A DNA stretch of 64,000 bases from contig JBLDXI010000029.1 in assembly GCA_047495785.1 (NCBI GenBank), forward strand, positions 2,976,001-3,040,000, given 5' to 3'. Position 1 is the stretch's first letter; every line of letters begins with the position of its first letter. The notes beneath the pieces are model-generated. The model was not told the DNA's origin and made no database searches. It was given only the letters and a program-made list of their open reading frames with translations. A program made the position numbers and the translations under genes. This document shows, piece by piece, positions 15,308-63,221 of the stretch. The stretch is from Lepidodermella squamata (lineage: Eukaryota > Animalia > Gastrotricha).

Positions 15308-17274
15308 TTACGCCGTGGTGGATTGGCATCGATCCAACGTGAGGCCATATGCCGATGTTGACGCATAGATCACAGTATTGGCTGCGCTACCAGCGCCAGT
15401 TCCAGCTACAAGAGCGGCACAGCAGGCTGTGTACGAGGTGAAGGCTTTCAATGAGGGGCTCGAAGTCTGAGATGAAAATGGTTGATTGAATTGATAAAAA
15501 ACGCAAACAGAACAAGATAACTTACGACCCCTGACCCTGCTTCAACATCACCGACAGCATTGGAAGTGTGCGGGAAGCGAACGCAGTTGCCAACCTTAAC
15601 GACACTTGTGGTAGCTGTAATCTTGTAAGGGATACTATCATCGGTTGATATACAGGCAAGAGCCGGAGCCACTGATGCTGTGAGGCCAGGCAGGATCTCG
15701 TAGCGAATGTTGGCGGTCAACGGTGAAGCCGGGGCTGCAGCGGCGCAGCAGTCAGGGAATGAGCTGTAGGAGTTCGGGACAGATGCAGTTGCTGTGGCTT
15801 GCTGAATACAACTTAAGTCATTCACTGCTTGAAATATCCATTCTCTATTTTACCGTGAATGTGTTAGGGCCGAAAGCAGCGGTGCAAGCCAGGCCGTTAG
15901 TAATGCACAGCTTGACAGTCTTAGAGACTGCTGTTCCAAACGTCGAGCCCGTGCATAGCTGAAACGTTTGCTGTTGCATAATGAAACATTTTAGGTTCTA
16001 GGAATTAACTATTCATGGGCAGGGGTGCAAAATCTGCAAAAATGGCGCAGTGGCTGCGCGGGAAATTTTTACGCGCAGCGGGAAATTTTTGGGAAATAGA
16101 GTTGTGAAAATGCTCAGAAATCGCCAAAAATCAGCGGGAAATAAGGGAAATCAGCGGGAAATCTAACAAGTAATTAATCTTCCGCCGATAATTAATTTCA
16201 ATAATTAAGTGATTGAACTAATTAGCAATTCACGAATGACTTTTCTATCTAATTCCAATAATAACTTCTGTTTAACTAACGCGAAATCGGTGATAATAAC
16301 GGTTAGAAATTTCAAAAAACAAATTAGATATTCCGATTCAGCGTAAAAAGTTGGGTATTCCTGCCAAGTTGCGCGCAGCTGTGTTTGAAAATGAGGGAGA
16401 AATGCGGACTGAAAGTTTGCTTGTAACTGTGTGCGCGCACAAATCAGCGAGCGCGCGCGCACAACAGCGCACAACTGCGCGATTTCCTCGCGTTGAAAAG
16501 TGAAGGGGAGCGGGCGAGTGCGAGTGAGCGAATTTTTGTGGAGCACACACGCACGCACACGCGCGCGCACACGTGCAAAAATTGAAATTTGTTTCCGCCT
16601 ATTTCTCAACCAATTTTCACGATAACTGTGCGCAAATTTACAGGGCGGGGTAACTTTTCGCGCTGAATCCGAATATCTAATTTGTTTTTTGAAATTCCTG
16701 AAATTGAAAAACTTGGTTTATCTGCGTAATTAAGAATGTTAGGGTAATTACGATATTTAGCCACAAGTTTTTGGTTACCCCTAAATATGTGAATTATACT
16801 AGTATCAAGCCGTATGAAATGCGAAATCTGGCCACCAATTTAGGCCTAAAAATGTTTATACAAATTTAAAAATGTGCCGAATCGAGTATTTTCAGACATT
16901 TTCTCACTCCAAAATACTGATGTTTCTTACAATTTTTGCGCCGCGCGGGGCTTTGCAAGAAATAACCCACAGAAATACATTCCGCGAGCGAGCGCAGCGA
17001 GCGAGCGGGTTTTTCGGGAAATTAAAATCACTGCGCGGGAAGTTCTGCAGATTTTGCAGCCTTGTGCAGAATTTACCGCTGTGGAGCACGCCTGGGTGCC
17101 TTGGCATTGAGTTCCGGTTTTGCTGATGCAGTTTTTGGTTGACGTATCGCAGTTGTTCGACGTAGCAACACACGATTGGCCAGAAGGGCAAGCGCTCGAG
17201 CTAGTCGTTGTGGCCGGGCAAGCCATAACGGCACTGCAGGCAGCGGCAAGAACAGCCAGAGTTGAAAAGGTCAT
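15308..17274 (-). CDS. Secreted Cys-rich family protein, copy A (intact, ~249 aa)
   Basis: Exons 17274-17077, 15970-15854, 15801-15526, 15466-15308, all phase 0 and GT-AG. Signal peptide MTFSTLAVLAAACSAVMA|C; motifs QTFQLCTG, FPDCC, NIRYEILPG, GNCVRFP, YTACC, YGLTLDRCQS. Confidence 0.85.
16020..17064. mobile_element. Non-autonomous DNA element in intron 1 of copy A, with a nested inverted-repeat element (~16290-16705)
   Basis: TIR-like ends CAGGGGTGCAAAATCTGCA / TGCAGATTTTGCAGCCTTG and GCGGGAAA subterminal repeats. Internal inverted pair AAACAAATTAGATATTCCGATTCAGCG / CGCTGAATCCGAATATCTAATTTGTTT. The equivalent intron in copy E is only 64 nt. Confidence 0.75.
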
Positions 17275-17327
17275 TGGCGGCGAAGTCGAAGTCGGAAAAT
17301 GGATGCTCTGACAGAAATTTCGGCTGG

Positions 17328-17334
17328 TTTTATA
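17328..17334 (-). promoter_or_regulatory. TATA box of copy A (equivalents at 20053-20059, 24253-24259, 36964-36970)
   Basis: TATAAA(A/T) located 50-75 bp upstream of the ATG in four paralogues. Confidence 0.65.
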
Positions 17335-17759: not shown

Positions 17760-18012
17760 TGCACACAACAACACGACAGTCTGTAGGCGGGGTTCGACCA
17801 GAGCGAGTTTGCTACGCTTGCATAGATGTGATCATCTAAAGGTTCAGCCGTAATTATTGGCTAGGTAATGGGCTTTTATGGTTTAGAATTATCAGTTAAG
17901 ATACAAGCAAGAGCCGGGGCCGTGATGCCTGATGGCAGGATCTCGTAGCGAATGTCAGCTGCGTTCGGTGCATTCATCGCTGCGACGGCACAACAGTCTG
18001 CAAACGAGTTGA
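17760..18012 (-). pseudogene. Degenerate exon-3/4 fragment of the Cys-rich family
   Basis: FNSFADCCAVAAMNAPNAADIRYEILPSGITAPALACILTD, then a stop; no exons 1-2. Confidence 0.75.
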
Positions 18013-18017
18013 ATTGC

Positions 18018-19010: not shown

Positions 19011-19056
19011 TGTTAATATCAGTCCATGAGTCGACGCTCTTTTGCTCAAAGCTCTT

Positions 19057-21529: not shown

Positions 21530-22150
21530 AAAACGTAAGAAAACAAGACAACTTATGACTCCTGGCCCTGCTTCAACATCACCGACAACATTGGAAGTGT
21601 GTGGGAAGTTAACACAGTTGCCAACATTTGTAGATGGCCCGTTGCTATAGTTGCAGTAATCTCGTATGTGGCAGAATCATCAGCTCCGATGCAGGCTAGA
21701 GCCGGACAAACAGTTTCCGTCTTGGCAGGAAGGCCTGGCAGGATCTCGTAGCGAAATTTAGCGGTATTAGGCGCAGTCGGGGCTGCAGCGGTGCAGAGGT
21801 GTAGGAGTTCGGAGCAGTTGGAGTTGCCGGGGCTTGCTGAAACAACATGTGCTATTCACAGCTTGATCTCGATTCTCTATCTTACCGTGAAGGTGCTGGG
21901 GCTGAAAGCGACGTTGCACGCCAGGCCGATAGAAATACACAGCTTGACAGTCTTGGAGACAGCTTAGAGACCGAAGGTCGAGCCAGTGCACAGTTGAAAG
22001 GTTTGCTGTAGCATAATGAACAATTTCAAGTTCCGATAAACGATAAATCTTTCTTCAGACATTGAGTTTTTGTTTGGTTGCGTTTTTGGTTTGCGAATGC
22101 TACCCAGACATTCGGCGAGCTGCAAGACGGCATGACTCGGCCGCATGACT
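21530..22150 (-). pseudogene. Cys-rich family pseudogene (exons 2-3 with indels, CC motif deleted, no exon 4)
   Basis: QTFQLCTGSTFG followed by an indel; KFRYEILPG and GNCVNFPHTSN retained; its upstream region 22330-22470 matches 31865-31970. Confidence 0.75.
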
Positions 22151-23140: not shown

Positions 23141-23183
23141 TCATTCCATGAGTCGATGCATCGCTCCTTTGTTCAAAGCTCTT

Positions 23184-24181: not shown

Positions 24182-24294
24182 TCGTCCGAATGAAGTTTAA
24201 AGTTTAACAAGACAGAAAAAAGAAGATGATGAAGAAGGAAAAACGAGGCTGCTTTTATAGGCAAAGTCAGCATGCTTCTGTCGACCGTAATTAC

Positions 24295-26917
24295 AATTGG
24301 AATCTTCTTAACCCGAAGGTTGCAGAGGCGATGAAGGAAGTTTTTAATGACTTTGGCCTGCATCCGGCCTATGCTAACTTGGTAACACGTCCTGCTTCTG
24401 GAAAGTGCCTGGATCATTTCTGGTCAAACGTTCCTGACTCGGAAGTGGCAATGGCTGGGACAGTAGTCGGGCTCAGCGACCATTACGGAACGACAATGGT
24501 TCTTGAAAACAGTGGCGTTACTGAAACGAAAAATGCAGATGTTCGCGTAATACGTGACCTGCGCAACATTGACTCGAATCGTTTAAATTGCATTCTGGGA
24601 GCTAAATTAGATTCGATCGATCAGAAGGCATTTCATGACTGTGAAAGCTATTGGAAAATTATCAAAGCCTACATACTGGAAGCGGTCAACGAAGTTGCCC
24701 CGTTGATTGTGAAGAAGCCCAATCAACCAAACAAAAAGCGGAAGCCCAGTGTTGACCCGACCCTATCACAGCGTGAAAGGAAAAGAATACGTCGAAAAAT
24801 GCGTCGAGAAAAATATCACAAGCGTCTGACTGAAGGAGGTCGAGATCCGCGCAAAATATGGCGCGTGATAAATGATTTCAGACCGAAACCCAAACGCGGT
24901 GGACCCTTTCAAGAGCTCGGTGGAAATGAGTCATTGGAAAAGGCAAATGCTTTCAATGTATTTTTCGCGCAAGCCGGCGCGAAAGTTGCTCAAACATTAG
25001 CGGCGAGCCTCAGCTTTGTTAGGCGCCGAAAAAAGTATCCTAAACTCGAATTTCGGTCTGTCTCGCTAGCTGAAGTGGAGGCAGCTATCGATAAACTATC
25101 CTACAAAGCGACAACTGGCTATGACGGCATACCTGAGTGCGTTGTAAAGATGACCAAATCCACAATCTCCTGTCATCTGGCGAGATTATTCAACATGGGA
25201 ATCGCGGAAGGAGTCTTTGTTTCAGACTGGAAGATTTCGATCGTGTCTCCTCTTCACAAATCGGGAAACCGTACTGACCTAAGCAATTATCGTCCCATAT
25301 CAATAACATCACCGATCGCACGTACATTTGAGCGATGCTTGTCATTCCAACTAAAAAAGCATCTTTTCGAATTCTGGACACCGGCACAGCATGGATTTAG
25401 GGAGAAGCATTCCACAGACACCTGTGTCGGCGAATTCACTGAGGACTGGAGACGTTCTATGTGTGAAGGCAAGGTCGTTGGTGCCATTTCAATCGACCTA
25501 TCAAAGGCATTCGATACGTTGAACCATGGTGGCATCATCGAGTCATTCAAAAGTGCGGGTCTTTCAACAAGCGCCCTGAATCTACTGAGTAACTACCTGA
25601 GCGATCGCCGCCAGGCTACAAAGATTAACAGCGCACTATCTGCCTTCGAAGAAATTCACCATGGTGTGCCTCAGGGCTCAGTTTTAGGGCCACTTATGTT
25701 TACAGTGTACGTAAATGAACTATCACTCGTCGTTACGCGCTGCGGAATCAAACAATACGCAGACGATATAACAATTTATTTCGCCAGTCGGAACGTCAAC
25801 GAACTCAGATCGGTTCTTCAACAGGAAATCAATCGGGTTTGTTGCTGGTTGAAATCCAACTCCTTGCAGGTTAACGGTAAAAAGTCGCAATTTTTGATAT
25901 TGAAATGCGCGATGCCTACGGCTCCGGATTTCTGTATTAAAATCGGCGACGCAATTGTTAAGCCGTCAAGTGCAATGGTAACACTTGGCTTTACGATCGA
26001 CAATAAACTGTCTTTCAAGAAGCACATAAATGGTGCCAAAAGCAAAGCAAGAAGAGGTTTGTTTGCTCTCAAGCTGGCCTCGAAGTTCGTAAGTCGTAGG
26101 ACTGCTATCTTAATGGCCAATGGTTTGATATTTAGTCACTTGAATTACGGTGACCTGACCTTGGGCCAAGCTGCCCCGACCACACTGGCCAGGCTTCAAT
26201 CGACGCAAGACCGAGCAGTTCGAGTTATTTGTGGCGCTCATCCGCTCGCTGATGCTCAACCACTGCGACATCGCCTTGGCTGGGTTGACGTGGAACAAAA
26301 ACACGCCATCCACCTGGCCACCTTCATATGGAAGTGCCTTAACAAGCAAGCACCGGCTGCAATGCAAGCGCTTTTTTGTCTGAACCCGCCTCCCCGATAC
26401 GAGGTTCGAAATTCCGAACCCATGTTCAAGCCGAAATGCGACTCAAAACGAGAAATGCTTAGTCTGAGTTACAGAGGTCCCGAACTGTGGAATCAACTGC
26501 CTATTGAGGCACGGCAGGCCGAGTCAGCTGACATATGCCGTTCAATTGCTCACGCTTTTTTCTACAACAAAAATGCCTCTAGTTTAGCACTTTAATAAAT
26601 TGATTGCACTCTATTTTTTTACTGTTGTGAAGCTATTATGAGCTGCTACTGCCTTTCATGAAGTTGTTGAGATTTTGTTTTAATATTATCTTTATTATTT
26701 TTACACACTATGTACTACTGATCCAAATTGTTGACTGATCACTGCTACATATTAAAACGATGAATGGTCCAAACCTTTGTTTCGTCTCACTGTGTTCACT
26801 TTTCCTGTACTAAATCTGAACCTGTCCTGAAATTATCTGTTGCTTTTTCCTTCAAACATTGTCAAGCTGCCCTCTCTTGGGTGTCATAGCTTCTAAATAA
26901 ATAAATAAATAAATAAA
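24295..26917 (+). mobile_element. 5'-truncated LINE (CR1/L2-group-like; end of APE domain plus uninterrupted RT ORF) with (TAAA)n tail
   Basis: NWNLL, LDHFW and GLSDH (APE); NYRPISI, QHGFR, IDLSKAFD, GVPQGSVLGP and YADD (RT); stop at 26595; tail ~26895-26917. The empty site is visible in the paralogous B1 promoter (TAATTAC|TACCGTA, ~20091-20104). The first ~23 aa of the track ORF are host flank. Confidence 0.93.
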
Positions 26918-28048: not shown

Positions 28049-29266
28049 CTCAGCTGCATTCCTCTCGCCGCCTCGAGCTCGATAGTGATCCTCATGTTGT
28101 TATCCAGTTGTCCAGTGTATCTCGGATGGCACGGAATACAGAAAAACTTTTCCTGCACGAATGACCGTAGGAATCGAGGCTGCGAAGCATAGAGCGAAGT
28201 AGGACCGCAGAACTGGTAGGGACCAGAAAAATCGGCATAAGGGTCCCCCTTTGGTCTTTGAATGAGCTCACCGTAAGGACCGATGGAACTGGTAGGGATG
28301 ACCATCCCTAGCTGTACTTCGCTCTCTGCTGCGAAGTAATCGAACACTGTGTGGAGATTGAAGCCAAGACGTTTTCTTCATAACTTCCATCCAAATTGTT
28401 TTTGAATGGCAGGTGGCCAAAGGTGATTGGAGTGAGAATTGAATACTGGGAAATAACATAAACAGTCCATATGTTAATGTCCCTCATATATTCTCATAGA
28501 ATACCAGAATGCCATTATTCATAAACCAGGGTGAATTTTACTTCAAGTTTACTTCAAACTCAACCGCATCTTGAAAGAAATCTTGAAGAGAAAGGTTCTA
28601 GTGGCTTTTATTATTAGGCCTGTTGCGGCGATCATCCAACTTATGCCGTAATACAGCCAATGGAGGTCCGAGGTCCGAGTGCGAAGCCACTTTCAACTAA
28701 TCTTTTTGATGTTCTCAAAGCTGTGGCTTATCGGGTTTTTTTTTACTTCTGGAAGGTGGAAGGAAGCTAATTCAACCTTTGTTGATCTCGTAATAAGGGC
28801 GATGGTAAATACAAAGACAAAGGCACCGCTGAAGACAACATGGATTCAATTTATGCAGCGAGCTAGGCCTCTCCTTGTTACACACCCTTAAGTGCCTTAA
28901 CCCTTTTAGTCCAGATACGCTGCATCGGTGAAGATTGAAACGAACCAATGATGATTAATAGACGCGCATTCAGAGTTAAGCAAACCATTGAGCTGAAAAT
29001 CGCAATTTCAATGAAATTTGCACGCAATTCTCTGAAGGCGGTCCCAGTCGAATTACGTTGGAAACCCGATCAAAATAGCATCTGTAGAATTTACACATCA
29101 CATTGAAGTTTGCATGGACGTAGGTGTTCAAAGTTGTACCGGATTACGGTATAACAGTTGAAGTTTCGCTCACAAATATCACTACGATCAAGTTGAAAGA
29201 TCGAAGTTTTTTTATTAGGGAGAGGTGGATTGGCATCGCTCCAAAGTGAGACCATACGCCGATGTT

Positions 29267-30358
29267 CCCACATGGTTGGTTATTTTTTGCTTCAATGGAA
29301 AATGTGATTCCGCCCGGTGTTTCCGCCCGGTGATTCCGCCCGCTCACGCGTTTTAAGGTGGATCTTTTATTATTAATTTCGGTTAAAATCCAAATCATTG
29401 AATTACTGGGCGAACCAGACTCCATTTAGGGATTGGACTAGCAAAGCAAAAATTTGAACCAAAATAAAGCATTTTAACAAAAACCATTTTTATTGAACAA
29501 TAATACTGTGGGAGAGCTTATAAACAATAGTCAGTTCTGGATGTGACATGCACCGTGCAGTAAATTACTTGACAACTGGCGTCGACCGTGAAATGGCGTG
29601 ATTCAAACCGGTTCTTCAGGCTTAACAGGATCACAGCCCAACAATGCCAATGCCGTCGCTTCGCATAGAGATTTTCCACCGAAAGTCGTTGAACAGCATA
29701 GTCGGCGTATCGTTTCCTGGAATTTTGCACCGTGCCAATTGTCTCAAGCGCCAATTCTCCGATGTATTGTTGCAGTTATTCAGCAACGCCTTCAAAGTCA
29801 TCGCCGTCATCGCCGTCGGATTGAACACTGGATTGAACACTGAACATCGGCGAAGAGGAAATTCGGGCTTTTGCTATAGCAGCTCGATATCTTGAGCATT
29901 GCGGTTTTCACGAGCTGATTGGTGTCGCTCAGACTGCAACAGCCATATCCATTTGGTTAGAATCGACTGCGTTTCCGAGGATTAAATCGCCGATGCTGTG
30001 CGTGGTTTCAACCAACAAAGAATTCAGTGCAAAAATTGATTTAAAAAAGGAATGAAACAATTAGAATTTGTTAATCGATTTTTTAAGGTTGATTTTTTAA
30101 TTTCAACAATATTAATTTAGTCAGACACAGTGGGTATGAGTGTTTAGGCATTTTATCCAGATTTCCAGTGGAAAATTGGGTTTTTATTCAGAAAATAACC
30201 AACAATGTGGGAACAGGAATCCTAAACTTGTGTTTCGGGCAAAAACTCGATTTCAGCCCTTGAAAATACCCTCGGGCTTCGCTTCGCTACGCCCTCGGGC
30301 ATTTTCAGCGGGCCGAAATCTCGTTTCTGCCCTCAACACCGTTAAGGATTCCTTAATT
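29267..30358. mobile_element. Helentron/DINE-1-like non-autonomous insertion at a TT site
   Basis: Empty site GATGTT|GTCGCATA in copy E. Terminal CCCACATGGTTGGTTATTTT is inverted subterminally at ~30190-30210, followed by a ~140-bp terminal hairpin (30214-30354). No TSD other than TT. Confidence 0.6.
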
Positions 30359-31186
30359 GTCGCATAGTTCACAGTATTGGGGGCGTTACCAATGCTAGTT
30401 CCAGCTACCAGAGCAGCACAACAAGCTGTGTACGACGTGAAGGCTTTTAATGAAGGGCTCGGCTTCTGAGATGGTAATGGTTGATTTGCAATTAATAAAA
30501 ATTAATAAAATTAATAAAAAAGAAGAAGGTTACTTACGACTCCTGGTCCTGCTTCAACGTCAGCGACAGCATTGGCAGTGTGCGGGAATCGAACACAGTT
30601 GCCAACTTTGACGTCGATAGCAACAGCTGTGACCTTGTATGGCGTTGAATCATCAGTTCCGATGCAAGCCAGAGCTGGAGCTACAGCGGCTGTGAGGCCT
30701 GGAAGAATTTCGTAGCGAATGTTAGCAGCGTTCGGCGGAGCAGGGGCTGCCGCGGCGCAGCAGTCTGGGAACGAGCTGAAGGAGAATAGCGCAATTGGAG
30801 TTGCAGGGGTTTGCTGAGGAAACAACGAATGCTATTCACTGCTCGATCGTGATGTCTCTATCATCATACTCTATCATACCGTGAATGTCGATGGGTTAAA
30901 TGCGGCGGCGCAAGCCAGGCCGTTGGCAATGCACAGCTTGACAGTCTTAGAAATGGCTGTGCCAAAGGTCATCCCAGTGCATAATTGGAAAGTTTGCTGT
31001 TGCATAATGAATAATATTGAGTATTGAGTTAGCAAGAAGTCCGGATTTCCAAAAGCTTACCCACAGGCTTATAAAATTTAGAGAGGGGGAAGCAAGGGGG
31101 GAGGGGGACTTGCATGAAAAATATTTTGGGCTCATAGGCAACTCGAGTTCGCAATATAACCGCTTTTTCAGCGGCTTTGGATGTGC

Positions 31187-38915: not shown

Positions 38916-38919
38916 CGAT

Positions 38920-47889: not shown

Positions 47890-48175
47890 TGAGCAATGAT
47901 ATAAGAGCAAAACGAGATGAGAGCAACGAGATGAGAGCAGAACGACGACAGACGCGACTTGTTTTTTCTTCTTCGAACAGACAATTGAATCTCGACCCAT
48001 TAAGTATCTCGAATTGCTGTTAAACCGCTCCGCTAATCACTTGATAATGATGAAGAAAAAACAAGTCACGTGCCACTATTTTTTCGTGATTTATCATTAA
48101 TAATTGCTCTTTCGTCGTTCTGCTCTCATCTCGTTGCTCTCATCTCGTTCTGCTCTTATATCATTGCTCATATCT
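47890..48175. repeat. Inverted GAGCAACGAGATGA arrays (MITE-like; duplicated at +8279)
   Basis: TGAGCAATGATATAAGAGCA...GCAGAACGACGA is mirrored by TCGTCGTTCTGC...TGCTCTTATATCATTGCTCA. Confidence 0.65.
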
Positions 48176-48486
48176 CATTGCTCTAATTTCGCTTGCTTTT
48201 TTCGCACACAACCTAATATTTTATGTCCACAAAAATCTCATGAACATTTTTTCAATCACTTCTGGATTTTTTATGCAATATTTGAAAAGTTCACTCCTCT
48301 TTTTAGTAATGATTCATTCAGCAATTTAGCGTGTCAGATCTTCTGATAATATACCAGCCTGATCAAAAGGCAGACGGGTTTAGAGCCCTATCAAAAATTG
48401 CCGTTTTTTCAACGGCCTCTTTGTAAGGAACTCGGGAACATAGTTAAGTTTATTTTCCTTCCACTGTGATTATGCCTTGAATACGT

Positions 48487-48869
48487 CATTATAGGGCGAC
48501 TTTGCAGTCACGGGATTTAGGGGTCGCTTGTTTTGCTGGTCTGAGTCGCTTATTCGCGAGGTCGTTGTGGTGGGGCGGTCGTGTAAAAATTTCTCGCTAA
48601 AAAACGAGAGTGAAAAAATGATGCACCACCAGGAGTCGAACTAAGGATGCTGGAATATAAAGCCATGTTTTGATCCACTACGCCACCAATTCATAGTAAC
48701 TATGAGTTTCTATCAGTGGATCGATTGACAGCAATATGGGTGTAAATATTTTCCCGGCTTTTTACACGACCGCCCCACCACACGACCTCGCGAACAAAAG
48801 CGACCCAGACCAGCAAAACATAGGCGGACTTTGCTCTTAATCCCGTGACTGCTAAGTCGCCCTATAATG
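48487..48869. mobile_element. MITE with ~100-bp TIRs enclosing a degenerate tRNA-like A/B-box segment (copy at 56766-57148)
   Basis: CATTATAGGGCGACTTTGCAGTCACGGGATT / AATCCCGTGACTGCTAAGTCGCCCTATAATG; minus-strand TGGCGTAGTGG ... GTTCGACTCC within 48621-48688. Confidence 0.75.
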
Positions 48870-48997
48870 GTATTGCGTTGTTGTTGATACGCACGCCATC
48901 GTTCGGTCTTTTTAACAAAGATCTTGCTTGTATCATTTTGATCATTCTGGTTATTTTCAGCTAGTAAACCCAGTTTTTTTTCCTAGTGAGGTTTTGT

Positions 48998-51900
48998 TTA
49001 CGGCGTGGTGGATTGGCATCGTTCCAATGTGAGGCCATAAGCAAATGATGTTGTTGTCATTATAACAGTATTTGGAGCACTTCCTGTAAGAAGTGCGCAG
49101 CAGGCTGTGTATGATGTAGCTGCATAGGTGTTGGCAGGGCTGGTGACCTACGATTGCAATTATTGATCATTAATAAACGTGTGTGATATACGCGTCAGAC
49201 TATGTGTAACTTACGACTCCGGATCCGGCTGTAAGGGCAGCATCACTGACGAGATTGGAAGTATGCGGGAAGCGAACGCAGTTGCCGACCTTCGTATTAA
49301 ATACGCTTGAAGTAATCTTGTATGGATTAGCATCATCAGTGCTGATGCATGCGAGAGCCGGAGCTACTGATACTGATCCTGGGAGGATCTCGTAGCGAAT
49401 GTTAGCAGCGTTCGGCGGGGCCGGGGCTGCAGCTGCGCAACAGTCTGGGAAAGACGTGAACGAATTCGGGGCAGAAGGAGTCGCAATGGCTTGCTGAATA
49501 AAACCGATGTTATTCGCTGTTTATAATCGCGATTTTTCATCTTACTGTGAATGTGCTGGGAGAGCCGAAAGCGGCGGTGCAAGCCAGGCCGTTAGAAATG
49601 CACAGCTTGACAGTCTTAGAGACTGCTGTTCCAAAGGTCGAGCCAGTGCATAATTGGAAGGTTTGCTGTTGCATGATGAAGAATATTGAGTTCGAGCATG
49701 GAGTAAGGTTTGCTAACATTTTACCCGAGCTATAAGATGTTACGTTGGGGGCTTGTATCAAGAATATTCGCATCAATATAACCGATATTTCTGCGGCTTG
49801 GGTGAGGCAACAATCAACAATTTTCAACGGGACCCGTGAAAATTATCTCGCTTCCAATTAGATCAGGAATGCTCATCTCTCCCTTATACTTTAACCATAT
49901 TGCCCTTCTTTTCTATTTTTTACAGCGTGTCCTATGATCCAGTGCTTCTCAACCTTCATTTTTCGGGCCACATGCGGCCCGCAGCCAGATTTTGTGCGGC
50001 CCGGCACTCAACTAGGTAACTTGTATTGGTTGCGGCCCGCTAGCCTTGTTATCAATCATTTTTAAATAGCTTTAAGGTACAAGCGATGCCCGGAAGTCCA
50101 ACTACAGGGTTCATATGAATCATCCCTATTTTAGTGCATTTTTAGCCAACTTTCGGGTTGAAAATGCCCGAAAAAGCGTCAGCTAAAGCTCGCTTCGCTC
50201 GCGAATTGATTTGCAAGTAGTTTTTAACCGCAAACTTTTCGAGGCCGAGCGTTAAAAATTATCACCCCCACACCAAAATCCTGACTACCCTACTGAGTTT
50301 AACGCAGTTTATACCATTAATAAAGCCACTCATTCCCTTATTCCTTATTCGTTCATTTACGCTAATAAATTTTTTCAAATGCCCTCAAGGCCCGTTCTTG
50401 AACATTTTGCGTAAATAAATTCCAGTTATGATTTTCCAGTTTCTATTTGCGATGAGCGGAAATGACATTGCGAGGTCATAAAAAATGCTCATAAAACTTG
50501 ACAATTCTTTTGCTTTTTGACAATTCCTAACACATACTCAATACCTACTCATGAATGCTCAATTTTTGTTAAATTTTTTGTTTCAAATTTCATGGCAATA
50601 AAATTAGCGACTAAACAGCAATAATATCTGTTGAATTTCGCTCACATTATAAACATGCGGACAGCTGTGTTCTTACAATAAAATGTTAGCGGCCCGCAGG
50701 GATGGAAAATACTCATACTCATACTCATACTCATACTCAAATCGTAATGAACAGTTAGCAAATGGTAAATTGATGATCAGCAGTATGTGATTTCGAGGCG
50801 CCTCACCGCAGATGTTACATGTTTATCAAATAGAGCAGAATTATGTTTAATATAGTTGCAGAACGCTTGATGAGAATTATTTACGACAACAGAAGACAGA
50901 CGGTTCCACGCAGCACGAACACGCCTAGAGAAGCAGAATTTATAGCTTAGGTTATTTCTACACGCGCTCATCTTCACAGAGTGAGGAGGTAGGCGAGGAT
51001 TCCGGCAGATTTCAAAGAAATCAGAGAAATCAATGTCAACTAATCCCTGATACATTTTATGCATCAAAATCAAATCATGTTGGAGGCGGCGAACTTCAAG
51101 CGTCGTTAAACCCAGTTTTTTCAGACGATCTTCGTAAGAGGCACCTTCGACCGATTTGTGGTATGCGCTTCGATAAAGTAGGCGTTTCGTAAAACGTTTC
51201 TGTACCGACTCCAGGTCATCGATGTCCTGCAGGTTAAACGGCGAATACACGGCAGGGCAAAAGTCCAGACGAGACAGCGTATATGTCTTATACGCTCTGA
51301 ATCGGAGAGTTTTAGAAGAGAAAGACTTCCTTATCATACCGTTGATGCGATGGCATTTGGCGGCGAGAGACTGACAGTGTTCTGAAAGTGATAGTTTTGA
51401 GTCGATGATAACGCCCAGGCTTCACGCTTCACGGAGTTTACCGTCTGTAGCTCCACACCTTTGATGTCGAATTTAAACGGAAACTCGTTCTTGCCCATTT
51501 TCAGAACCACGCATTTCTTCGAATTTACAGCTAACTCATTTGTATCGAACCAATTGATAAGCCGATTTAGGTCTTCCTGTAGTTCGGAGCAGTCTGCGAG
51601 GCTTCGAATGACCTTGTACAATTTTGTGTCGTCCGCAAATAATTTCATGATCGAATTCAGAATACACGAGTTCACATCCGATGTGAATATAAGGAACAGT
51701 ATTGGGCCCTGGACCGAGCCCTGAGGTACCCCTGATGTCACCGGGGACCATTCCGAATTTTTCGAGTTGACAGTCACGCGAAAGAAGCGATCTGAAAGAA
51801 AAAATCTGACCCAGTTGAGAAGCGCACCACAAACGTTGATGTCAAGAAGCTTTGCTAATAACAACGATATCGGAACAGTGTCAAATGCCTTGGATAAATC

Positions 51901-54900
51901 AAGGTAAATAACTACTACATCAAGAAGCTGGTCTAGAAATTTTAGCCAGTCATTTGTACAGGAAAGAAGCTGCGTCTCACAACACCTACGCGATAAGAAG
52001 CCGAATTGATTTTCTGGTAACAGGTTATTCTTGTATAGATAATTCAACAGGTTGTCTTTCACGAGGGTTTCTTGGATTTTACATAGAATGCAAGTCAGAC
52101 TAACAGGCCTATAATTCCCCGCAGATGAGACATCACCGCTCTTTTTATAGATAGGTGCCACATTAGCATACTTCCACACAATAGGAATTTCACCAGTTTG
52201 AAACGAAATTTGAAAAAGCAGACATAGCGGAGTGCAAAGTGATCGAGCTAATTTTTTAATCCGAACTGGTAGGTTGTCTACGCCTCCCACAGGCTTTTCC
52301 TTGATTCCACATGCATAATTATATACCGATTCAGCATTAAAGTCGATAGTTTGCAAGCAGTCATTGACAGTCTTAAAGTTAGATGGAGATGAGAACGATT
52401 TGTTGTTGTAGGCTTCAGCGAATTGTTTTCTAAAAACTTCAGCCTTCCCTGAGTCATCCACAATGCTAATATCGTTAGAGACAAGAGCTGGTATTGCCGG
52501 ACGAGATTTGAAACGTAGAGAGAAGTAGTTATACAGATCATCAATGTTATTTGCAGAAAGCAGTTTATCCTCGTATTCGCGTCTGGCTTTACGATTTTCA
52601 CAATCATACAATAAGCAGGCTTTTTTTATAACGAAGATGGTCGGAGGATAATTTACCACCTGCGACCCATTGGCGATAGAGGCGACTTTTCTTGTTGGAA
52701 AGTCGCTGAATGTACGCGCTCACCCAAGGCATCCTCCCTTTCTTACGTTTGCGAGTCTTCCGGCGCGGTACGAACAACAAAATACCACGATAGAGGGTGT
52801 GCAGAAACCGAGAGTAACACATATCCATGGTGCAATTTGAAAACATTTCAGCCCAGTTTATCGACTCCACATAGTTTCCAAATTTGACGTAGTCGCATTT
52901 TCGAAAATTAAAAGCGCTTAAGACATGCGAGTTAGTGCTCGATGAACGAAATTTCACATTAATCCTGAATCTAACAATGCTATGATCACATGTGATTGCG
53001 AGCGGTTCATCGACGACAACACAAGGTATGATATTAGGAATATTAGATATGACCAAATCTAGAATATTATCACCACGCGTTGGTTTATCAACATATTGAG
53101 TCAGATTGTTTTTTAGAAAAAACTCGGTGAAACAAGAGTATAATAAATTGTTCGGATTTGTAAAGGTCACCCAGTTGAAGTCAGGTAAATTAAAATCACC
53201 CACCATCACACACGGCTCAGTAGTATCGACTTGCTTTTGCAAATAATTCACAAGATCTCGAATGGATTCTATAGGCGAGTTGGGCGAACGATAAACAATA
53301 ACTACCCTTAAAGAAATTCCATTAACCTTAAAGAACCCTTAAAGAAAATGAGTTAGAAAATGGCCCACTACGCAAAAAGGTTGAGAAGCACTGCTATGAT
53401 CAACCAAAACAAATCCTCTATACCTATACTCAATGGGTTTCTAAAATCGAGTTCTAAGTTCCAAGTCTTGGCCAGAGACAGTTGAAATAACATGCCATAC
53501 CTGCAACCTCGGTTTAACTTTACAACGAAGGCCTCTGTGATCTGTGATAACTGATTCAATTAAACGATTTGTTAAGCTTACAGGGCTGTGATCAGCAGAG
53601 TAATACATTTGTTTTTGTTAAACAACGCTAATATAAACGCTATGTAATATAAATCGCTCGCGCTATGTACTGCAAAAAATACTGCCGTTTTTTTATGCTG
53701 TTCATCTAGCTCTAATATTGTTAAACTGTCACGTTATTCCCGTCATTTGGGCCATTTCCTTCATTCGATCTGCCCTTCCGGTCTGCATAACCGATGGCAT
53801 CGGGACAATGCTCAAATTCTTTATTAACACTAGGAAGCTAGTTCCAACAATTTCTGACGAGAAAACATCGTCATTCAAGTCGCATTTTTTGTGCCACAAG
53901 CTACCTCTACCAGCAGCTGATGCCTTCCTATTGTGACTGAAATCACAAGCCAGTCTCCCAGGTTCCCCAGGTTGACAAATTTACCTTCTCGCGTCTTTTC
54001 TGGCAAAATATTCTAGTGCCCCGCTGATAGCTTTCAAGTCATCGGACAATTGTGTGCACTATTTTGTGTGGCACTACCTGTGATTTAAACCACAACTAGA
54101 CTAACCCGTTAATTTATTTAGAATTCATTCGATCATGATCCAATCACGACTCTGTTTCGGTCTTCACGCGGCTTGGAAGATATCTCGACCAAGTCGATAT
54201 GAACGCGATACTAAATCCCTTTGGCTGTGATAGGTTGACCTCTGGGAAAGCTTTGGGATCGGTCGCTATGCTTCGCTGAACGGAAGCAATTGGGCATTTC
54301 GAATTGAGAAAATTATGAAATTATGAACATCAGGCTTGAAATAAAAGCTTAGTCGGGCGAGGCGTGTGTCTTGGCGCGTACCGTAAATTCCGAAATACAA
54401 GCCCAGGCGGCGCTCTTTGTCGGCACTTTGATGTTCTTTGTAGTGTCGCCTGGGCTTGTATTTGAATATTTACGGTATCTGTCTTCGATCTAGCGGGATT
54501 GCTCATTACGCTAGATTTTTAACATGGGGCAAAAAATCTGGGTTTAGGAGCAAATTGGTCTAAAAATGGTCTAAAATCTAGGTTTTAATCCAATATACAA
54601 TTTGCTCTTTGTACGTCATATCTTTATCTTATCGGAAAAAACACTACTTACTGAGGGTGCAGGACAGGGACTGGCTATTGGCTGGCAAGATTTCGATGGA
54701 TCCGAGCACAGGTTAGTGGTTGGTACGCATATTTGACTGCTTGGGCAAGTAAGAGGGGCTATTGGCTGGCAAGATTTCGATGGATCTGTGCACAGGTTAT
54801 TTGCTGGCACGCACACCTGACTGCTTGGGCAACCATTATATGAAGGCGGACTGGTAAATGGTACGAAGCTTGATGGAGGCGATGGCGAAGTGCAAGCTTG

Positions 54901-54942
54901 GCTAGTTGTCAATAAAATTGATAAAATTGCAGTTATCAGCAT
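48998..54942 (-). CDS. Secreted Cys-rich family protein, copy G (probably intact, ~279 aa; 5-kb TE-filled intron 1)
   Basis: Exons 54942-54652, 49665-49546, 49493-49215, 49147-48998, phase 0. Signal peptide MLITAILSILLTTSQA|C; two CPSSQxCVPxxNLCxDPSKSCQPIA units. The exon1-exon2 join is inferred, and exon 1 lacks the last Cys seen in copies A and E. Confidence 0.68.
49940..53393 (+). mobile_element. Complete non-autonomous hAT element, 8-bp TSD CTATGATC, interrupted by a CR1-like LINE
   Basis: 17-bp TIR CAGTGCTTCTCAACCTT / AAGGTTGAGAAGCACTG; TSD at 49932-49939 and 53394-53401. Confidence 0.93.
50711..53343 (-). mobile_element. 5'-truncated, frameshifted CR1-like LINE with (TGAGTA)n tail; probable TSD GAAAAT
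   Basis: VYRSP, VGDFN, PTRGDNILDLV and CDH (APE); NYRPVSLT, YLDLSKAFD, GVPQGS and LFADDTK (RT); LESVQKRFTK and FSRRVRAAWN C-terminal motifs; split over three ORFs. Confidence 0.92.
54381..54475. mobile_element. ~95-bp Tc1/mariner-type MITE flanked by TA (copy at 62660-62754)
   Basis: TA|CCGTAAATTCCGAAATACAAGCCCAGGCG ... CGCCTGGGCTTGTATTTGAATATTTACGG|TA. Confidence 0.75.
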
Positions 54943-57276
54943 TAGATGATTCCAATTGCAAGGCAACATATTCGTTGAGACTATATAAGAGTAGTGGATA
55001 CTGCAGTGAGTGTAAATAGATGCGCTTTGCTGTTTTTGTTTAAACTGCCACAAGCGTCTTCAAAACATGCTAAGCTTCTCACGTTAACTAGCCAACGATG
55101 AAGCAGTATAAGTGCTTGTTTGAAACCGGATGTTATCCATCAAGTCAGGGCCGGATTAACGCATGGGCACAGCGGCATTTTACTAATAATTTCAGAACGA
55201 TTATTGGGCCTTCCTTCGGTCGCATAATTATGTTGAAATGTAACTACGAGGTAGTGTTTTGTTTGCAAGAACTTTCGAGGAACAAGTTTTATATGGTTTT
55301 TTTTACCTGGTCGTATTTATTCGGCATCAATTTGCGCTACGGATTTAATTAGAAACTTGGAATATCTTCATGGCAGAACTAACGCTGAACTGGCGAAACT
55401 AGCGTGACAGCAGGCGTGCTTCAGATTGGTGACAATAATTATCAAATGACCGCGCGCTCTCGCGCTATTTATTCAACAACCAACTCGCTACAAGATTGTC
55501 TTCATTCTTCCTCGCCGACGAAAAAACCCTAACCTCTCGACAGTTTCATTGTATCTGAAATAATACGACATTTCGTTATAGCGAAAGAATACATCGATAA
55601 GACGTAAGTGCCGTTGTGAGGGTTTGACTAATTTATTAAATATCTTATAAAATTTCGTTTTTATTGGAAATAAGCACTTTGATAGCTGAACGGGGTCGCC
55701 TATGGTTCCTACATCTCCTCATTCACCTCTCAACATTTCAAGAACATTTACATTTCAAGATGAAATATCGCAATAAAAATAAGTTGAATTTTCAAGCTCA
55801 ATAATTGTCTCATTCTCATCACTTTCTTTTTCTTAATAAAGAAGACAAAAACGTTAATGAGCGCCCCGCTAAACATCGTTAAGAGATAGCAATGATGCCA
55901 TTTTGATGAGGCTGCAATAAAAAAGCTATGTTCGTATTCCAATGAGCCCATAAACATATAACTGTTGGGCATATAATTTTGAAACGCACTGTAGTATATT
56001 TAATAAACAATTAAAAATAAATGTGACAGCCGTTGCGGATTTTTGGCTTGCAATATGGGCAGCGATGACGTTGCCGACAGCATGTGCAAAAATGAGCAGC
56101 GATCAACCGAAAACAGTTGCCTATTTTGAAAGTGAAAAAGCTCAAATAGCGTCATAAGCGATGGGACTTGAGCAATGATATAAGAGCAAAACGAGATGAG
56201 AGCAACGAGATGAGAGCAGAACGACGACAGACGCGACTTGTTTTTTCTTCTTCGAACAGACAATTGAATCTCGACCCATTAAGTATCTCGAATTGCTGTT
56301 AAACCGCTCCGCTAATCACTTGATAATGATGAAGAAAAAACAAGTCACGTGCCACTATTTTTTCGTGATTTATCATTAATAATTGCTCTTTCGTCGTTCT
56401 GCTCTCATCTCGTTGCTCTCATCTCGTTCTGCTCTTATATCATTGCTCATATCTCATTGCTCTAATTTCGCTTGCTTTTTTCGCACACAACCTAATATTT
56501 TATGTCCACAAAAATCTCATGAACATTTTTTCAATCACTTCTGGATTTTTTATGCAATATTTGAAAAGTTCACTCCTCTTTTTAGTAATGATTCATTCAG
56601 CAATTTAGCGTGTCAGATCTTCTGATAATATACCAGCCTGATCAAAAGGCAGACGGGTTTAGAGCCCTATCAAAAATTGCCGTTTTTTCAACGGCCTCTT
56701 TGTAAGGAACTCGGGAACATAGTTAAGTTTGTTTTCCTTCCACTGTGATTATGCCTTGAATACGTCATTATAGGGCGACTTTGCAGTCACGGGATTTAGG
56801 GGTCGCTTGTTTTGCTGGTCTGAGTCGCTTATTCGCGAGGTCGTTGTGGTGGGGCGGTCGTGTAAAAATTTCTCGCTAAAAAACGAGAGTGAAAAAATGA
56901 TGCACCACCAGGAGTCGAACTAAGGATGCTGGAATATAAAGCCATGTTTTGATCCACTACGCCACCAATTCATAGTAACTATGAGTTTCTATCAGTGGAT
57001 CGATTGACAGCAATATGGGTGTAAATATTTTCCCGGCTTTTTACACGACCGCCCCACCACACGACCTCGCGAACAAAAGCGACCCAGACCAGCAAAACAT
57101 AGGCGGACTTTGCTCTTAATCCCGTGACTGCTAAGTCGCCCTATAATGGTATTGCGTTGTTGTTGATACGCACGCCATCGTTCGGTCTTTTTAACAAAGA
57201 TCTTGCTTGTATCATTTTGATCATTCTGGTTATTTTCAGCTAGTAAACCCAGTTTTTTTTCCTAGTGAGGTTTTGT

Positions 57277-60200
57277 TTACGGCGTGGTGGATTGGCATCG
57301 TTCCAATGTGAGGCCATAAGCAAATGATGTTGTTGTCATTATAACAGTATTTGGAGCACTTCCTGTAAGAAGTGCGCAGCAGGCTGTGTATGATGTAGCT
57401 GCATAGGTGTTGGCAGGGCTGGTGACCTACGATTGCAATTATTGATCATTAATAAACGTGTGTGATATACGCGTCAGACTATGTGTAACTTACGACTCCG
57501 GATCCGGCTGTAAGGGCAGCATCACTGACGAGATTGGAAGTATGCGGGAAGCGAACGCAGTTGCCGACCTTCGTATTAAATACGCTTGAAGTAATCTTGT
57601 ATGGATTAGCATCATCAGTGCTGATGCATGCGAGAGCCGGAGCTACTGATACTGATCCTGGGAGGATCTCGTAGCGAATGTTAGCAGCGTTCGGCGGGGC
57701 CGGGGCTGCAGCTGCGCAACAGTCTGGGAAAGACGTGAACGAATTCGGGGCAGAAGGAGTCGCAATGGCTTGCTGAATAAAACCGATGTTATTCGCTGTT
57801 TATAATCGCGATTTTTCATCTTACTGTGAATGTGCTGGGAGAGCCGAAAGCGGCGGTGCAAGCCAGGCCGTTAGAAATGCACAGCTTGACAGTCTTAGAG
57901 ACTGCTGTTCCAAAGGTCGAGCCAGTGCATAATTGGAAGGTTTGCTGTTGCATGATGAAGAATATTGAGTTCGAGCATGGAGTAAGGTTTGCTAACATTT
58001 TACCCGAGCTATAAGATGTTACGTTGGGGGCTTGTATCAAGAATATTCGCATCAATATAACCGATATTTCTGCGGCTTGGGTGAGGCAACAATCAACAAT
58101 TTTCAACGGGACCCGTGAAAATTATCTCGCTTCCAATTAGATCAGGAATGCTCATCTCTCCCTTATACTTTAACCATATTGCCCTTCTTTTCTATTTTTT
58201 ACAGCGTGTCCTATGATCCAGTGCTTCTCAACCTTCATTTTTCGGGCCACATGCGGCCCGCAGCCAGATTTTGTGCGGCCCGGCACTCAACTAGGTAACT
58301 TGTATTGGTTGCGGCCCGCTAGCCTTGTTATCAATCATTTTTAAATAGCTTTAAGGTACAAGCGATGCCCGGAAGTCCAACTACAGGGTTCATATGAATC
58401 ATCCCTATTTTAGTGCATTTTTAGCCAACTTTCGGGTTGAAAATGCCCGAAAAAGCGTCAGCTAAAGCTCGCTTCGCTCGCGAATTGATTTGCAAGTAGT
58501 TTTTAACCGCAAACTTTTCGAGGCCGAGCGTTAAAAATTATCACCCCCACACCAAAATCCTGACTACCCTACTGAGTTTAACGCAGTTTATACCATTAAT
58601 AAAGCCACTCATTCCCTTATTCCTTATTCGTTCATTTACGCTAATAAATTTTTTCAAATGCCCTCAAGGCCCGTTCTTGAACATTTTGCGTAAATAAATT
58701 CCAGTTATGATTTTCCAGTTTCTATTTGCGATGAGCGGAAATGACATTGCGAGGTCATAAAAAATGCTCATAAAACTTGACAATTCTTTTGCTTTTTGAC
58801 AATTCCTAACACATACTCAATACCTACTCATGAATGCTCAATTTTTGTTAAATTTTTTGTTTCAAATTTCATGGCAATAAAATTAGCGACTAAACAGCAA
58901 TAATATCTGTTGAATTTCGCTCACATTATAAACATGCGGACAGCTGTGTTCTTACAATAAAATGTTAGCGGCCCGCAGGGATGGAAAATACTCATACTCA
59001 TACTCATACTCATACTCAAATCGTAATGAACAGTTAGCAAATGGTAAATTGATGATCAGCAGTATGTGATTTCGAGGCGCCTCACCGCAGATGTTACATG
59101 TTTATCAAATAGAGCAGAATTATGTTTAATATAGTTGCAGAACGCTTGATGAGAATTATTTACGACAACAGAAGACAGACGGTTCCACGCAGCACGAACA
59201 CGCCTAGAGAAGCAGAATTTATAGCTTAGGTTATTTCTACACGCGCTCATCTTCACAGAGTGAGGAGGTAGGCGAGGATTCCGGCAGATTTCAAAGAAAT
59301 CAGAGAAATCAATGTCAACTAATCCCTGATACATTTTATGCATCAAAATCAAATCATGTTGGAGGCGGCGAACTTCAAGCGTCGTTAAACCCAGTTTTTT
59401 CAGACGATCTTCGTAAGAGGCACCTTCGACCGATTTGTGGTATGCGCTTCGATAAAGTAGGCGTTTCGTAAAACGTTTCTGTACCGACTCCAGGTCATCG
59501 ATGTCCTGCAGGTTAAACGGCGAATACACGGCAGGGCAAAAGTCCAGACGAGACAGCGTATATGTCTTATACGCTCTGAATCGGAGAGTTTTAGAAGAGA
59601 AAGACTTCCTTATCATACCGTTGATGCGATGGCATTTGGCGGCGAGAGACTGACAGTGTTCTGAAAGTGATAGTTTTGAGTCGATGATAACGCCCAGGCT
59701 TCACGCTTCACGGAGTTTACCGTCTGTAGCTCCACACCTTTGATGTCGAATTTAAACGGAAACTCGTTCTTGCCCATTTTCAGAACCACGCATTTCTTCG
59801 AATTTACAGCTAACTCATTTGTATCGAACCAATTGATAAGCCGATTTAGGTCTTCCTGTAGTTCGGAGCAGTCTGCGAGGCTTCGAATGACCTTGTACAA
59901 TTTTGTGTCGTCCGCAAATAATTTCATGATCGAATTCAGAATACACGAGTTCACATCCGATGTGAATATAAGGAACAGTATTGGGCCCTGGACCGAGCCC
60001 TGAGGTACCCCTGATGTCACCGGGGACCATTCCGAATTTTTCGAGTTGACAGTCACGCGAAAGAAGCGATCTGAAAGAAAAAATCTGACCCAGTTGAGAA
60101 GCGCACCACAAACGTTGATGTCAAGAAGCTTTGCTAATAACAACGATATCGGAACAGTGTCAAATGCCTTGGATAAATCAAGGTAAATAACTACTACATC

Positions 60201-63200
60201 AAGAAGCTGGTCTAGAAATTTTAGCCAGTCATTTGTACAGGAAAGAAGCTGCGTCTCACAACACCTACGCGATAAGAAGCCGAATTGATTTTCTGGTAAC
60301 AGGTTATTCTTGTATAGATAATTCAACAGGTTGTCTTTCACGAGGGTTTCTTGGATTTTACATAGAATGCAAGTCAGACTAACAGGCCTATAATTCCCCG
60401 CAGATGAGACATCACCGCTCTTTTTATAGATAGGTGCCACATTAGCATACTTCCACACAATAGGAATTTCACCAGTTTGAAACGAAATTTGAAAAAGCAG
60501 ACATAGCGGAGTGCAAAGTGATCGAGCTAATTTTTTAATCCGAACTGGTAGGTTGTCTACGCCTCCCACAGGCTTTTCCTTGATTCCACATGCATAATTA
60601 TATACCGATTCAGCATTAAAGTCGATAGTTTGCAAGCAGTCATTGACAGTCTTAAAGTTAGATGGAGATGAGAACGATTTGTTGTTGTAGGCTTCAGCGA
60701 ATTGTTTTCTAAAAACTTCAGCCTTCCCTGAGTCATCCACAATGCTAATATCGTTAGAGACAAGAGCTGGTATTGCCGGACGAGATTTGAAACGTAGAGA
60801 GAAGTAGTTATACAGATCATCAATGTTATTTGCAGAAAGCAGTTTATCCTCGTATTCGCGTCTGGCTTTACGATTTTCACAATCATACAATAAGCAGGCT
60901 TTTTTTATAACGAAGATGGTCGGAGGATAATTTACCACCTGCGACCCATTGGCGATAGAGGCGACTTTTCTTGTTGGAAAGTCGCTGAATGTACGCGCTC
61001 ACCCAAGGCATCCTCCCTTTCTTACGTTTGCGAGTCTTCCGGCGCGGTACGAACAACAAAATACCACGATAGAGGGTGTGCAGAAACCGAGAGTAACACA
61101 TATCCATGGTGCAATTTGAAAACATTTCAGCCCAGTTTATCGACTCCACATAGTTTCCAAATTTGACGTAGTCGCATTTTCGAAAATTAAAAGCGCTTAA
61201 GACATGCGAGTTAGTGCTCGATGAACGAAATTTCACATTAATCCTGAATCTAACAATGCTATGATCACATGTGATTGCGAGCGGTTCATCGACGACAACA
61301 CAAGGTATGATATTAGGAATATTAGATATGACCAAATCTAGAATATTATCACCACGCGTTGGTTTATCAACATATTGAGTCAGATTGTTTTTTAGAAAAA
61401 ACTCGGTGAAACAAGAGTATAATAAATTGTTCGGATTTGTAAAGGTCACCCAGTTGAAGTCAGGTAAATTAAAATCACCCACCATCACACACGGCTCAGT
61501 AGTATCGACTTGCTTTTGCAAATAATTCACAAGATCTCGAATGGATTCTATAGGCGAGTTGGGCGAACGATAAACAATAACTACCCTTAAAGAAATTCCA
61601 TTAACCTTAAAGAACCCTTAAAGAAAATGAGTTAGAAAATGGCCCACTACGCAAAAAGGTTGAGAAGCACTGCTATGATCAACCAAAACAAATCCTCTAT
61701 ACCTATACTCAATGGGTTTCTAAAATCGAGTTCTAAGTTCCAAGTCTTGGCCAGAGACAGTTGAAATAACATGCCATACCTGCAACCTCGGTTTAACTTT
61801 ACAACGAAGGCCTCTGTGATCTGTGATAACTGATTCAATTAAACGATTTGTTAAGCTTACAGGGCTGTGATCAGCAGAGTAATACATTTGTTTTTGTTAA
61901 ACAACGCTAATATAAACGCTATGTAATATAAATCGCTCGCGCTATGTACTGCAAAAAATACTGCCGTTTTTTTATGCTGTTCATCTAGCTCTAATATTGT
62001 TAAACTGTCACGTTATTCCCGTCATTTGGGCCATTTCCTTCATTCGATCTGCCCTTCCGGTCTGCATAACCGATGGCATCGGGACAATGCTCAAATTCTT
62101 TATTAACACTAGGAAGCTAGTTCCAACAATTTCTGACGAGAAAACATCGTCATTCAAGTCGCATTTTTTGTGCCACAAGCTACCTCTACCAGCAGCTGAT
62201 GCCTTCCTATTGTGACTGAAATCACAAGCCAGTCTCCCAGGTTCCCCAGGTTGACAAATTTACCTTCTCGCGTCTTTTCTGGCAAAATATTCTAGTGCCC
62301 CGCTGATAGCTTTCAAGTCATCGGACAATTGTGTGCACTATTTTGTGTGGCACTACCTGTGATTTAAACCACAACTAGACTAACCCGTTAATTTATTTAG
62401 AATTCATTCGATCATGATCCAATCACGACTCTGTTTCGGTCTTCACGCGGCTTGGAAGATATCTCGACCAAGTCGATATGAACGCGATACTAAATCCCTT
62501 TGGCTGTGATAGGTTGACCTCTGGGAAAGCTTTGGGATCGGTCGCTATGCTTCGCTGAACGGAAGCAATTGGGCATTTCGAATTGAGAAAATTATGAAAT
62601 TATGAACATCAGGCTTGAAATAAAAGCTTAGTCGGGCGAGGCGTGTGTCTTGGCGCGTACCGTAAATTCCGAAATACAAGCCCAGGCGGCGCTCTTTGTC
62701 GGCACTTTGATGTTCTTTGTAGTGTCGCCTGGGCTTGTATTTGAATATTTACGGTATCTGTCTTCGATCTAGCGGGATTGCTCATTACGCTAGATTTTTA
62801 ACATGGGGCAAAAAATCTGGGTTTAGGAGCAAATTGGTCTAAAAATGGTCTAAAATCTAGGTTTTAATCCAATATACAATTTGCTCTTTGTACGTCATAT
62901 CTTTATCTTATCGGAAAAAACACTACTTACTGAGGGTGCAGGACAGGGACTGGCTATTGGCTGGCAAGATTTCGATGGATCCGAGCACAGGTTAGTGGTT
63001 GGTACGCATATTTGACTGCTTGGGCAAGTAAGAGGGGCTATTGGCTGGCAAGATTTCGATGGATCTGTGCACAGGTTATTTGCTGGCACGCACACCTGAC
63101 TGCTTGGGCAACCATTATATGAAGGCGGACTGGTAAATGGTACGAAGCTTGATGGAGGCGATGGCGAAGTGCAAGCTTGGCTAGTTGTCAATAAAATTGA

Positions 63201-63221
63201 TAAAATTGCAGTTATCAGCAT
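57277..63221 (-). CDS. Cys-rich family copy G' (duplicate of G)
   Basis: Same exons as G shifted by 8279 bp. Confidence 0.65.
58219..61672 (+). mobile_element. Duplicate of the hAT element containing the nested LINE
   Basis: Same TIRs and CTATGATC TSD as 49940-53393. Confidence 0.92.
58990..61622 (-). mobile_element. Duplicate of the CR1-like LINE
   Basis: ORFs identical to those at 50777-53251. Confidence 0.92.

Follow-up and report, generated by a model that had tools for sequence, protein, structure and literature searches.

What are the genes repeated along the minus strand of a 64,000-nucleotide (nt) stretch of the gastrotrich Lepidodermella squamata (GenBank assembly GCA_047495785.1, contig JBLDXI010000029.1, positions 2,976,001 to 3,040,000; this whole stretch is hereafter the window), to which protein family do their products belong, and what might those products do? 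Between positions 15308 and 63221 of this animal DNA (GC ~43 %, with long interspersed nuclear elements [LINEs] and short introns) a gene of four exons, with GT-AG introns in phase 0, occurs in 11 copies. Their products form a taxonomically restricted multigene family, presumably secreted and built around a ten-cysteine (Cys) domain, and their most likely role would be that of an extracellular coat or matrix glycoprotein.

Searches of the window by tblastn, with the four exon peptides of copy A and later with exons of five copies and of P0001 (an outside homologue described below), found exactly 11 loci, all on the minus strand between 15308 and 63224, and no further copy in positions 1-15000 or on the plus strand. 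The array runs from the stop codon of copy A at 15308 to the start codon (ATG) of H' at 63221 (Table 1). Six copies are coding-intact (A, F, B1, B2, H, and H'), and five of the 11 are disabled by stops, frameshifts, deletions, or insertions: the relic at 17873-18016, C, D, E, and G. Complete four-exon models were read for A, F, H, B1, and B2, each with AG/GT at all borders and three phase-0 introns. Intron 2 of these genes is 50-52 nt long and intron 3 is 56-67 nt long; intron 1 is equally short in F, B1, and B2 (52-64 nt) but reaches 1106 nt in A and 4986 nt in H. Copies A and F have a TATA box in a conserved context 55-60 nt before the ATG, at -60 and -55, respectively, and another at -77 is common to B1 and B2; an AATAAA follows the stop of copy F. 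Additionally, a block of the 3'-untranslated region (TTTGTGAGCGAAACATTTC..ATGCTATAT) is conserved 30-60 nt past the stop of A-type copies (15230-15300, ~35910-35960, and downstream of D and E), and may be a regulatory element or may merely reflect shared ancestry.

Table 1. Copies of the array and associated features, in window coordinates (aa, amino acids; CDS, coding sequence).
Feature	Position	Strand	Exons or basis
Copy A, intact, 249 aa	15308..17274	-	exons 17274-17077, 15970-15854, 15801-15526, 15466-15308
A-type relic, part of exon 3 only, in-frame stop	17873..18016	-	tblastn and strand reading
Copy B1, intact, 255 aa	19057..19982	-	exons 19982-19716, 19663-19550, 19499-19251, 19194-19057
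Copy C, pseudogene; only exons 2 and 3 left, stop in exon 2, frameshift in exon 3	21557..22005	-	
Copy B2, intact, 273 aa	23184..24181	-	exons 24181-23864, 23801-23688, 23637-23386, 23321-23184
LINE reverse-transcriptase open reading frame (ORF), 789 aa, uninterrupted, between B2 and D	24226..26595	+	RVT_1, E = 4e-31
Copy D, pseudogene; exon 1 frameshift, exon 4 split into 30322-30462 and 29218-29283	29218..31757	-	
Copy E, pseudogene; start lost, exon 2 frameshift, repeat 34288-35073 in place of exon 3 end and exon 4 start	34231..35496	-	
Copy F, intact, compact, 252 aa	35985..36915	-	exons 36915-36706, 36641-36525, 36474-36193, 36134-35985
Copy G, pseudogene; exon 2 intact, frameshift at exon 3 start, deletion fusing exon 3 to last third of exon 4	38285..38816	-	
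Head-to-tail duplication, 8288-bp unit, carries H and H'	47080..63646 (47080-55367 / 55360-63646)		units 99.96 % identical
Copy H, intact CDS, 279 aa	48998..54942	-	exons 54942-54652, 49665-49546, 49493-49215, 49147-48998
LINE in intron 1 of H, endonuclease and reverse-transcriptase domains	50777-53251	-	domain search
Copy H', CDS identical to H	57277..63221	-	

The intact copies encode proteins of one plan: an N-terminal signal peptide, a Ser/Thr/Pro-rich, Cys-bearing stalk encoded by the rest of exon 1, and a head encoded by exons 2-4. The signal peptides were judged by inspection and not by a trained predictor. Each of the six N-termini is hydrophobic, with a mean hydropathy (Kyte-Doolittle) of 1.6-2.5 over residues 3-17, and has small residues at -3/-1, and the predicted mature chain starts with Cys-Pro (cleavage contexts VMA/C, VVA/C, GSA/C, SQA/C, and AQG/C); there is no hydrophobic C-terminal tail in the intact copies. 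The stalk consists of 36-64 % Ser, Thr, or Pro, with 5-9 Cys in C-x5-C-x6-C-like units, and its length varies by in-frame repeats, including a T10 run and SPSP runs in B1 and B2, one more CPSPNVCV unit in B2, and, in H, 1.9 copies of an 84-bp unit. Being both Ser/Thr/Pro-rich and variable in its repeats, the stalk is mucin-like and would be expected to carry O-glycosylation. The head is 166-183 aa long and contains 10 invariant Cys, distributed over exons 2, 3, and 4 as C-C-C / CC-C-C / CC-C, which would form five disulfides; secretion is likewise predicted. Ala, Thr, Ser, and Gly are abundant in the head, charged residues make up 7-11 %, the grand average of hydropathy (GRAVY) is +0.12 to +0.35, and N-glycosylation sequons are nearly absent. 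The number of Cys in mature A and B1 is odd.

Three motifs of the head are invariant across both subfamilies described below: F-x-L-C ... (L/F)-C ... C in exon 2, F-x-x-CC ... YE ... C ... PY ... G-x-CVRFP-x-T in exon 3, and Y-x-x-CC ... YGL-x-x-x-x-C in exon 4. The copies fall into two subfamilies, A/C/D/E/F/G/H and B1/B2, which are ~32 % identical and are separated in the tree with 100/100 support. An earlier note on this DNA had described about 11 same-strand copies sharing four exons and phase-0 introns, five of them disabled by indels, deletions, or transposable element (TE) insertions, as well as two subfamilies and a fixed Cys scaffold, from which it proposed a disulfide-rich fold. These claims are borne out: tblastn finds 11 copies, all on the minus strand (10 or 11, depending on the status of the H/H' duplication), the gene structure holds in the five spliced models, the lesions of the five disabled copies could be located, copy H joins the A-type subfamily, and the ten Cys are invariant between the two diverged subfamilies and in P0001.

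The intact A-type copies are under purifying selection. Among A, F, and H, the ratio of replacement to silent substitution rates (dN/dS, or omega) of the head is 0.22-0.25 at dS 0.7-0.8, and exon 2 is the most constrained part, with a dN/dS of 0.06-0.13. Exon 4 is the fastest part, with an omega of 0.67 for A/F and ~1.95 for B1/B2. The latter pair is young (dS 0.15) and has diverged mainly in exon 4, where 17 replacements stand against 3 silent changes.

Does the head belong to a family that has already been described? Pfam searches with A, P0001, and single exons gave a best E of 0.16, far below the cut-offs; a profile search of the sequences in the PDB gave no matches at E <= 10; and the best ESM Atlas scores, 0.62 and 0.71, are at chance level. 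The Atlas leads were rejected, as all were far under a meaningful score: uncharacterised diatom proteins (0.68-0.71), CPW_WPC, Kunitz, and galaxin (0.46). Three word-indexed protein searches (queries A, P0001, and a 7-row profile) returned nothing besides P0001 itself. When JGI metagenome contigs were scanned with the CVRFP block, there were 12 pattern matches, none of which was confirmed by tblastn. There was no Rfam match in the window, and literature searches on the run accession of P0001 and on the motif found nothing relevant. An exhaustive phmmer search with the head against 1.84 billion cluster representatives returned two proteins, P0001 and P0002. P0002 (E = 5e-4) is encoded on a 65-kb contig from a bacterial metagenome, with ordinary bacterial genes around it, and was rejected as a chance match.

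P0001 is a true homologue (E = 9e-10). It is 39-41 % identical across the whole head, keeps all ten Cys with one extra pair, and has a signal peptide, stalk, and head, as in the array proteins. The protein is a 227-aa ORF, preceded by a leader of 45 nt and followed by a trailer of 200 nt, on a 929-nt Logan contig from run SRR30674226. The ORF is contiguous across all three intron positions and the contig ends 12 nt past an AATAAA, and the contig is therefore very probably a spliced mRNA. As such, it supports the exon joins predicted for the array and implies that a member of the family is transcribed somewhere. The GC content and codon usage of P0001 are those of the window genes, and it is therefore possibly from the same or a closely related species.

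Judged by its sequence, the 10-Cys head belongs to no described family and is a new one, whereas the orphan secreted Cys-rich tandem array is itself a familiar kind. In animals that have been sampled poorly, secreted families restricted to one lineage are common. The array resembles taxonomically restricted secreted Cys-rich tandem families of invertebrates in its signal peptides, invariant Cys scaffold, same-strand copies, interleaved subfamilies, many pseudogenes, TE-rich spacers, and homologues confined to a narrow lineage. It differs from the described families of this kind in the domain itself, with 10 Cys, CVRFP and YGL motifs, and a length of 166-183 aa, and in the Cys-bearing, mucin-like stalk at its N-terminus. 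The earlier note had also proposed a lineage-specific family with no assignable domain. Both parts agree with the searches, since Pfam, the PDB profile search, and the Atlas gave no significant match, the phmmer search gave a single true homologue, and the word-indexed and metagenome searches added none. If this is correct, the head is a new extracellular disulfide-rich domain family and a candidate for a Pfam entry, from an animal lineage that is thinly covered by public data.

The preference for an extracellular coat or matrix protein comes from three features taken together: a charge-poor, hydrophobic head, a stalk of the mucin type, and the odd number of Cys in the mature chains of A and B1, which would make intermolecular cross-links possible. 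In such a protein, the stalk would present a compact, cross-linkable head, of which the exon-4 loop, from the second CC pair to YGL, may form the variable surface. A partial parallel is found in the peritrophins (CBM14 domains with Ser/Thr-rich linkers), which share the signal peptide, a repeat-variable Ser/Thr/Pro-rich segment, and a disulfide-stapled globular domain; however, the stalk of the array proteins is N-terminal and has C-x5-C-x6-C units, and there is no CBM14 signature or match.

A role in recognition or defence for the variable exon-4 loop is nearly as likely as one in a coat or matrix, and the choice between the two is a close one. In its full form, in which the head is a binding module, the exon-4 loop has been diversified by selection, and the flux of the array stems from an arms race with microbes or parasites, this alternative is possible, if somewhat doubtful. 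It would account for a birth-and-death array with two old subfamilies and for an exon 4 whose Cys and YGL stay fixed although replacements dominate it in B1/B2 and no other exon evolves as fast in A/F. Additionally, the array adjoins genes for secreted ankyrin/sushi and ankyrin-protease proteins. However, the overall omega of 0.22-0.28 is not elevated, the excess in exon 4 is not statistically distinguishable from neutrality, a hydrophobic and charge-poor head is unusual among soluble binders, and Pfam shows no lectin, Ig, toxin, or antimicrobial-peptide signatures.

Similarity within the head is limited to a 15-column motif common to the beginnings of exon 3 and exon 4, S-x-P..S-Y-x-S-F-x-x-CC-A-A (hhalign P = 1.4e-4); in both exons, a Cys lies 30 residues after the CC pair. 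Exon 2 has no similarity to exon 3 or exon 4 by hhalign. The shared motif hints, weakly, at an old duplication within the head. It would be a considerable, and improbable, step further if the head were a new fold that arose from the ancient duplication of a 'CC-helix plus beta-hairpin' unit (exons 3 and 4), forming a self-assembling, hydrophobin-like animal coat protein on a glycosylated stalk.

The same recurring CC pairs, each with a single Cys 30 residues later, and the same shared motif, as a hint of repeat architecture, could also be expected if the head belonged to a described family but had been missed by sequence methods; candidates are the galaxin-like di-cysteine repeats, a chitin-binding or peritrophin-type domain, or another Cys-rich extracellular domain. 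Galaxin and galaxin-like proteins (PF24748) are likewise secreted invertebrate proteins with CC pairs some tens of residues apart and lineage-specific expansions. However, the array proteins have only two CC pairs, inside a non-repetitive 10-Cys domain, and Pfam, including Galaxin_repeat, CBM_14, and the hydrophobins, gave no match at E <= 10 with any of the queries. As the PDB profile search was also empty and the galaxin cluster of the Atlas scored only 0.46, a missed membership of this sort is very unlikely.

Least likely of all is a hydrophobin-like, surface-active protein that self-assembles at interfaces: the last 8 of the 10 invariant Cys, which two further Cys precede, do follow the order C-CC-C-C-CC-C of fungal hydrophobins (PF01185, PF06766), and these are similarly secreted, hydrophobic (positive GRAVY in the array heads), and charge-poor, but three of the five spacings in A (27, 30, 22, 33, and 30 vs X5-10, X11-44, X8-23, X5-9, and X6-18) are out of range, namely 27, 33, and 30, the head of A is about twice the size (183 aa vs a protein of ~100 aa) with ten Cys and not eight, no hydrophobin model is matched, and the genes, of four exons each, are those of an animal.

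Several points weigh against the coat or matrix reading. The role is drawn from composition and architecture alone. The 17:3 count in exon 4 of B1/B2 is not significant on its own and is close to the neutral expectation, and may reflect relaxed constraint on the loop. P0001, with its similar GC content and codon usage, could be a paralogue, if a distant one, in this species or a sister species, and is thus not proof of a wider range. AlphaFold gave a predicted local distance difference test (pLDDT) score of 33.8 for A (2-row alignment) and 37.4 for P0001 (7-row alignment), which makes both models unusable; in both, each CC pair falls in a short helix and the YGL segment in a beta-hairpin, an agreement that is not evidence. 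No RNA run of the organism that could attest expression of a copy in the window was found, and the only matching run is DNA.

How did the array come to its present form? Its same-strand tandem paralogues differ widely in age, with a dS of 0 for H/H', 0.15 for B1/B2, and 0.6-1.0 for A/F/H, and saturation for A vs B. With diverged subfamilies and five of the 11 copies dead, this is a birth-and-death pattern. The array has grown via unequal crossing-over or segmental duplication, for instance of a 4-kb block and of the 8.3-kb unit that carries H. The 4-kb block, which is present twice, combines a B-type gene with relics of an A-type copy and of an ankyrin gene; 18915-19805 matches 23036-23953 at 84 %. 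The ankyrin-gene relics, at 18537-18908 (+) and 22822-23007 (+), adjoin B1 and B2 within the array and represent the 3' end of an ankyrin-repeat gene ending at 13698, to which they have ~80-84 % DNA identity. Their presence beside both B1 and B2 indicates that the block was duplicated as a unit.

The 8288-bp units differ by 2 mismatches and 1 gap, and H' is either a very recent duplicate or an assembly artefact, so that the array has 10 or 11 members. The only public run that matches the window consists of short DNA unitigs (X1), which are too short to confirm or refute an 8.3-kb duplication. One loose end, at 55366, agrees, apart from small differences, with the unique sequence that flanks 47086 on the left, which fits the left border of the first unit.

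Decay has proceeded via TE insertions, deletions, and frameshifts. One copy of a non-autonomous repeat of ~790 bp with no recognisable ORF has replaced parts of exons 3 and 4 of E; others lie in intron 1 of H and H'. Exon 4 of D carries a clean ~1.09 kb insertion (29284-30321) that occurs nowhere else in the window and shows no recognised domain. In G, exon 1 has had its 5' part replaced, and only its 3' end survives, upstream of 38816. The rapid turnover that the earlier note proposed is thus supported by the fraction of dead copies, by TEs inside genes, and by duplicates that range from dS = 0 to saturation. The array alone opens no long-standing question. It is a small and clean example of birth and death, and its 48 kb contain every stage, from a duplicate that is nearly identical and a young pair whose loop evolves fast to old subfamilies and TE-killed copies.

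The mobile and repetitive DNA in and around the array is varied. At least four LINE-type copies lie within or beside it, at 43291-46522 (+) and 14102-15130 (+) in addition to the two in Table 1, with RVT_1 domains and, in one, Exo_endo_phos_2. The copies of the ~790-bp repeat, at 34288-35073, 49940-50710, and 58219-58989, are 85 % identical. The block that replaced the 5' part of exon 1 of G (38855-39800, upstream of G) is open in several frames, with His/Pro/Cys-rich low-complexity peptides, and ~160 bp of it recurs at 55153-55314 and 63432-63593. Outside the array, the upstream neighbouring genes at 1908-13698 encode sushi/CCP repeats, ankyrin repeats, and a trypsin-like GDSGGP exon, and may or may not be functionally linked to it. 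A 30-bp tandem repeat occupies the start of the window (1-455).

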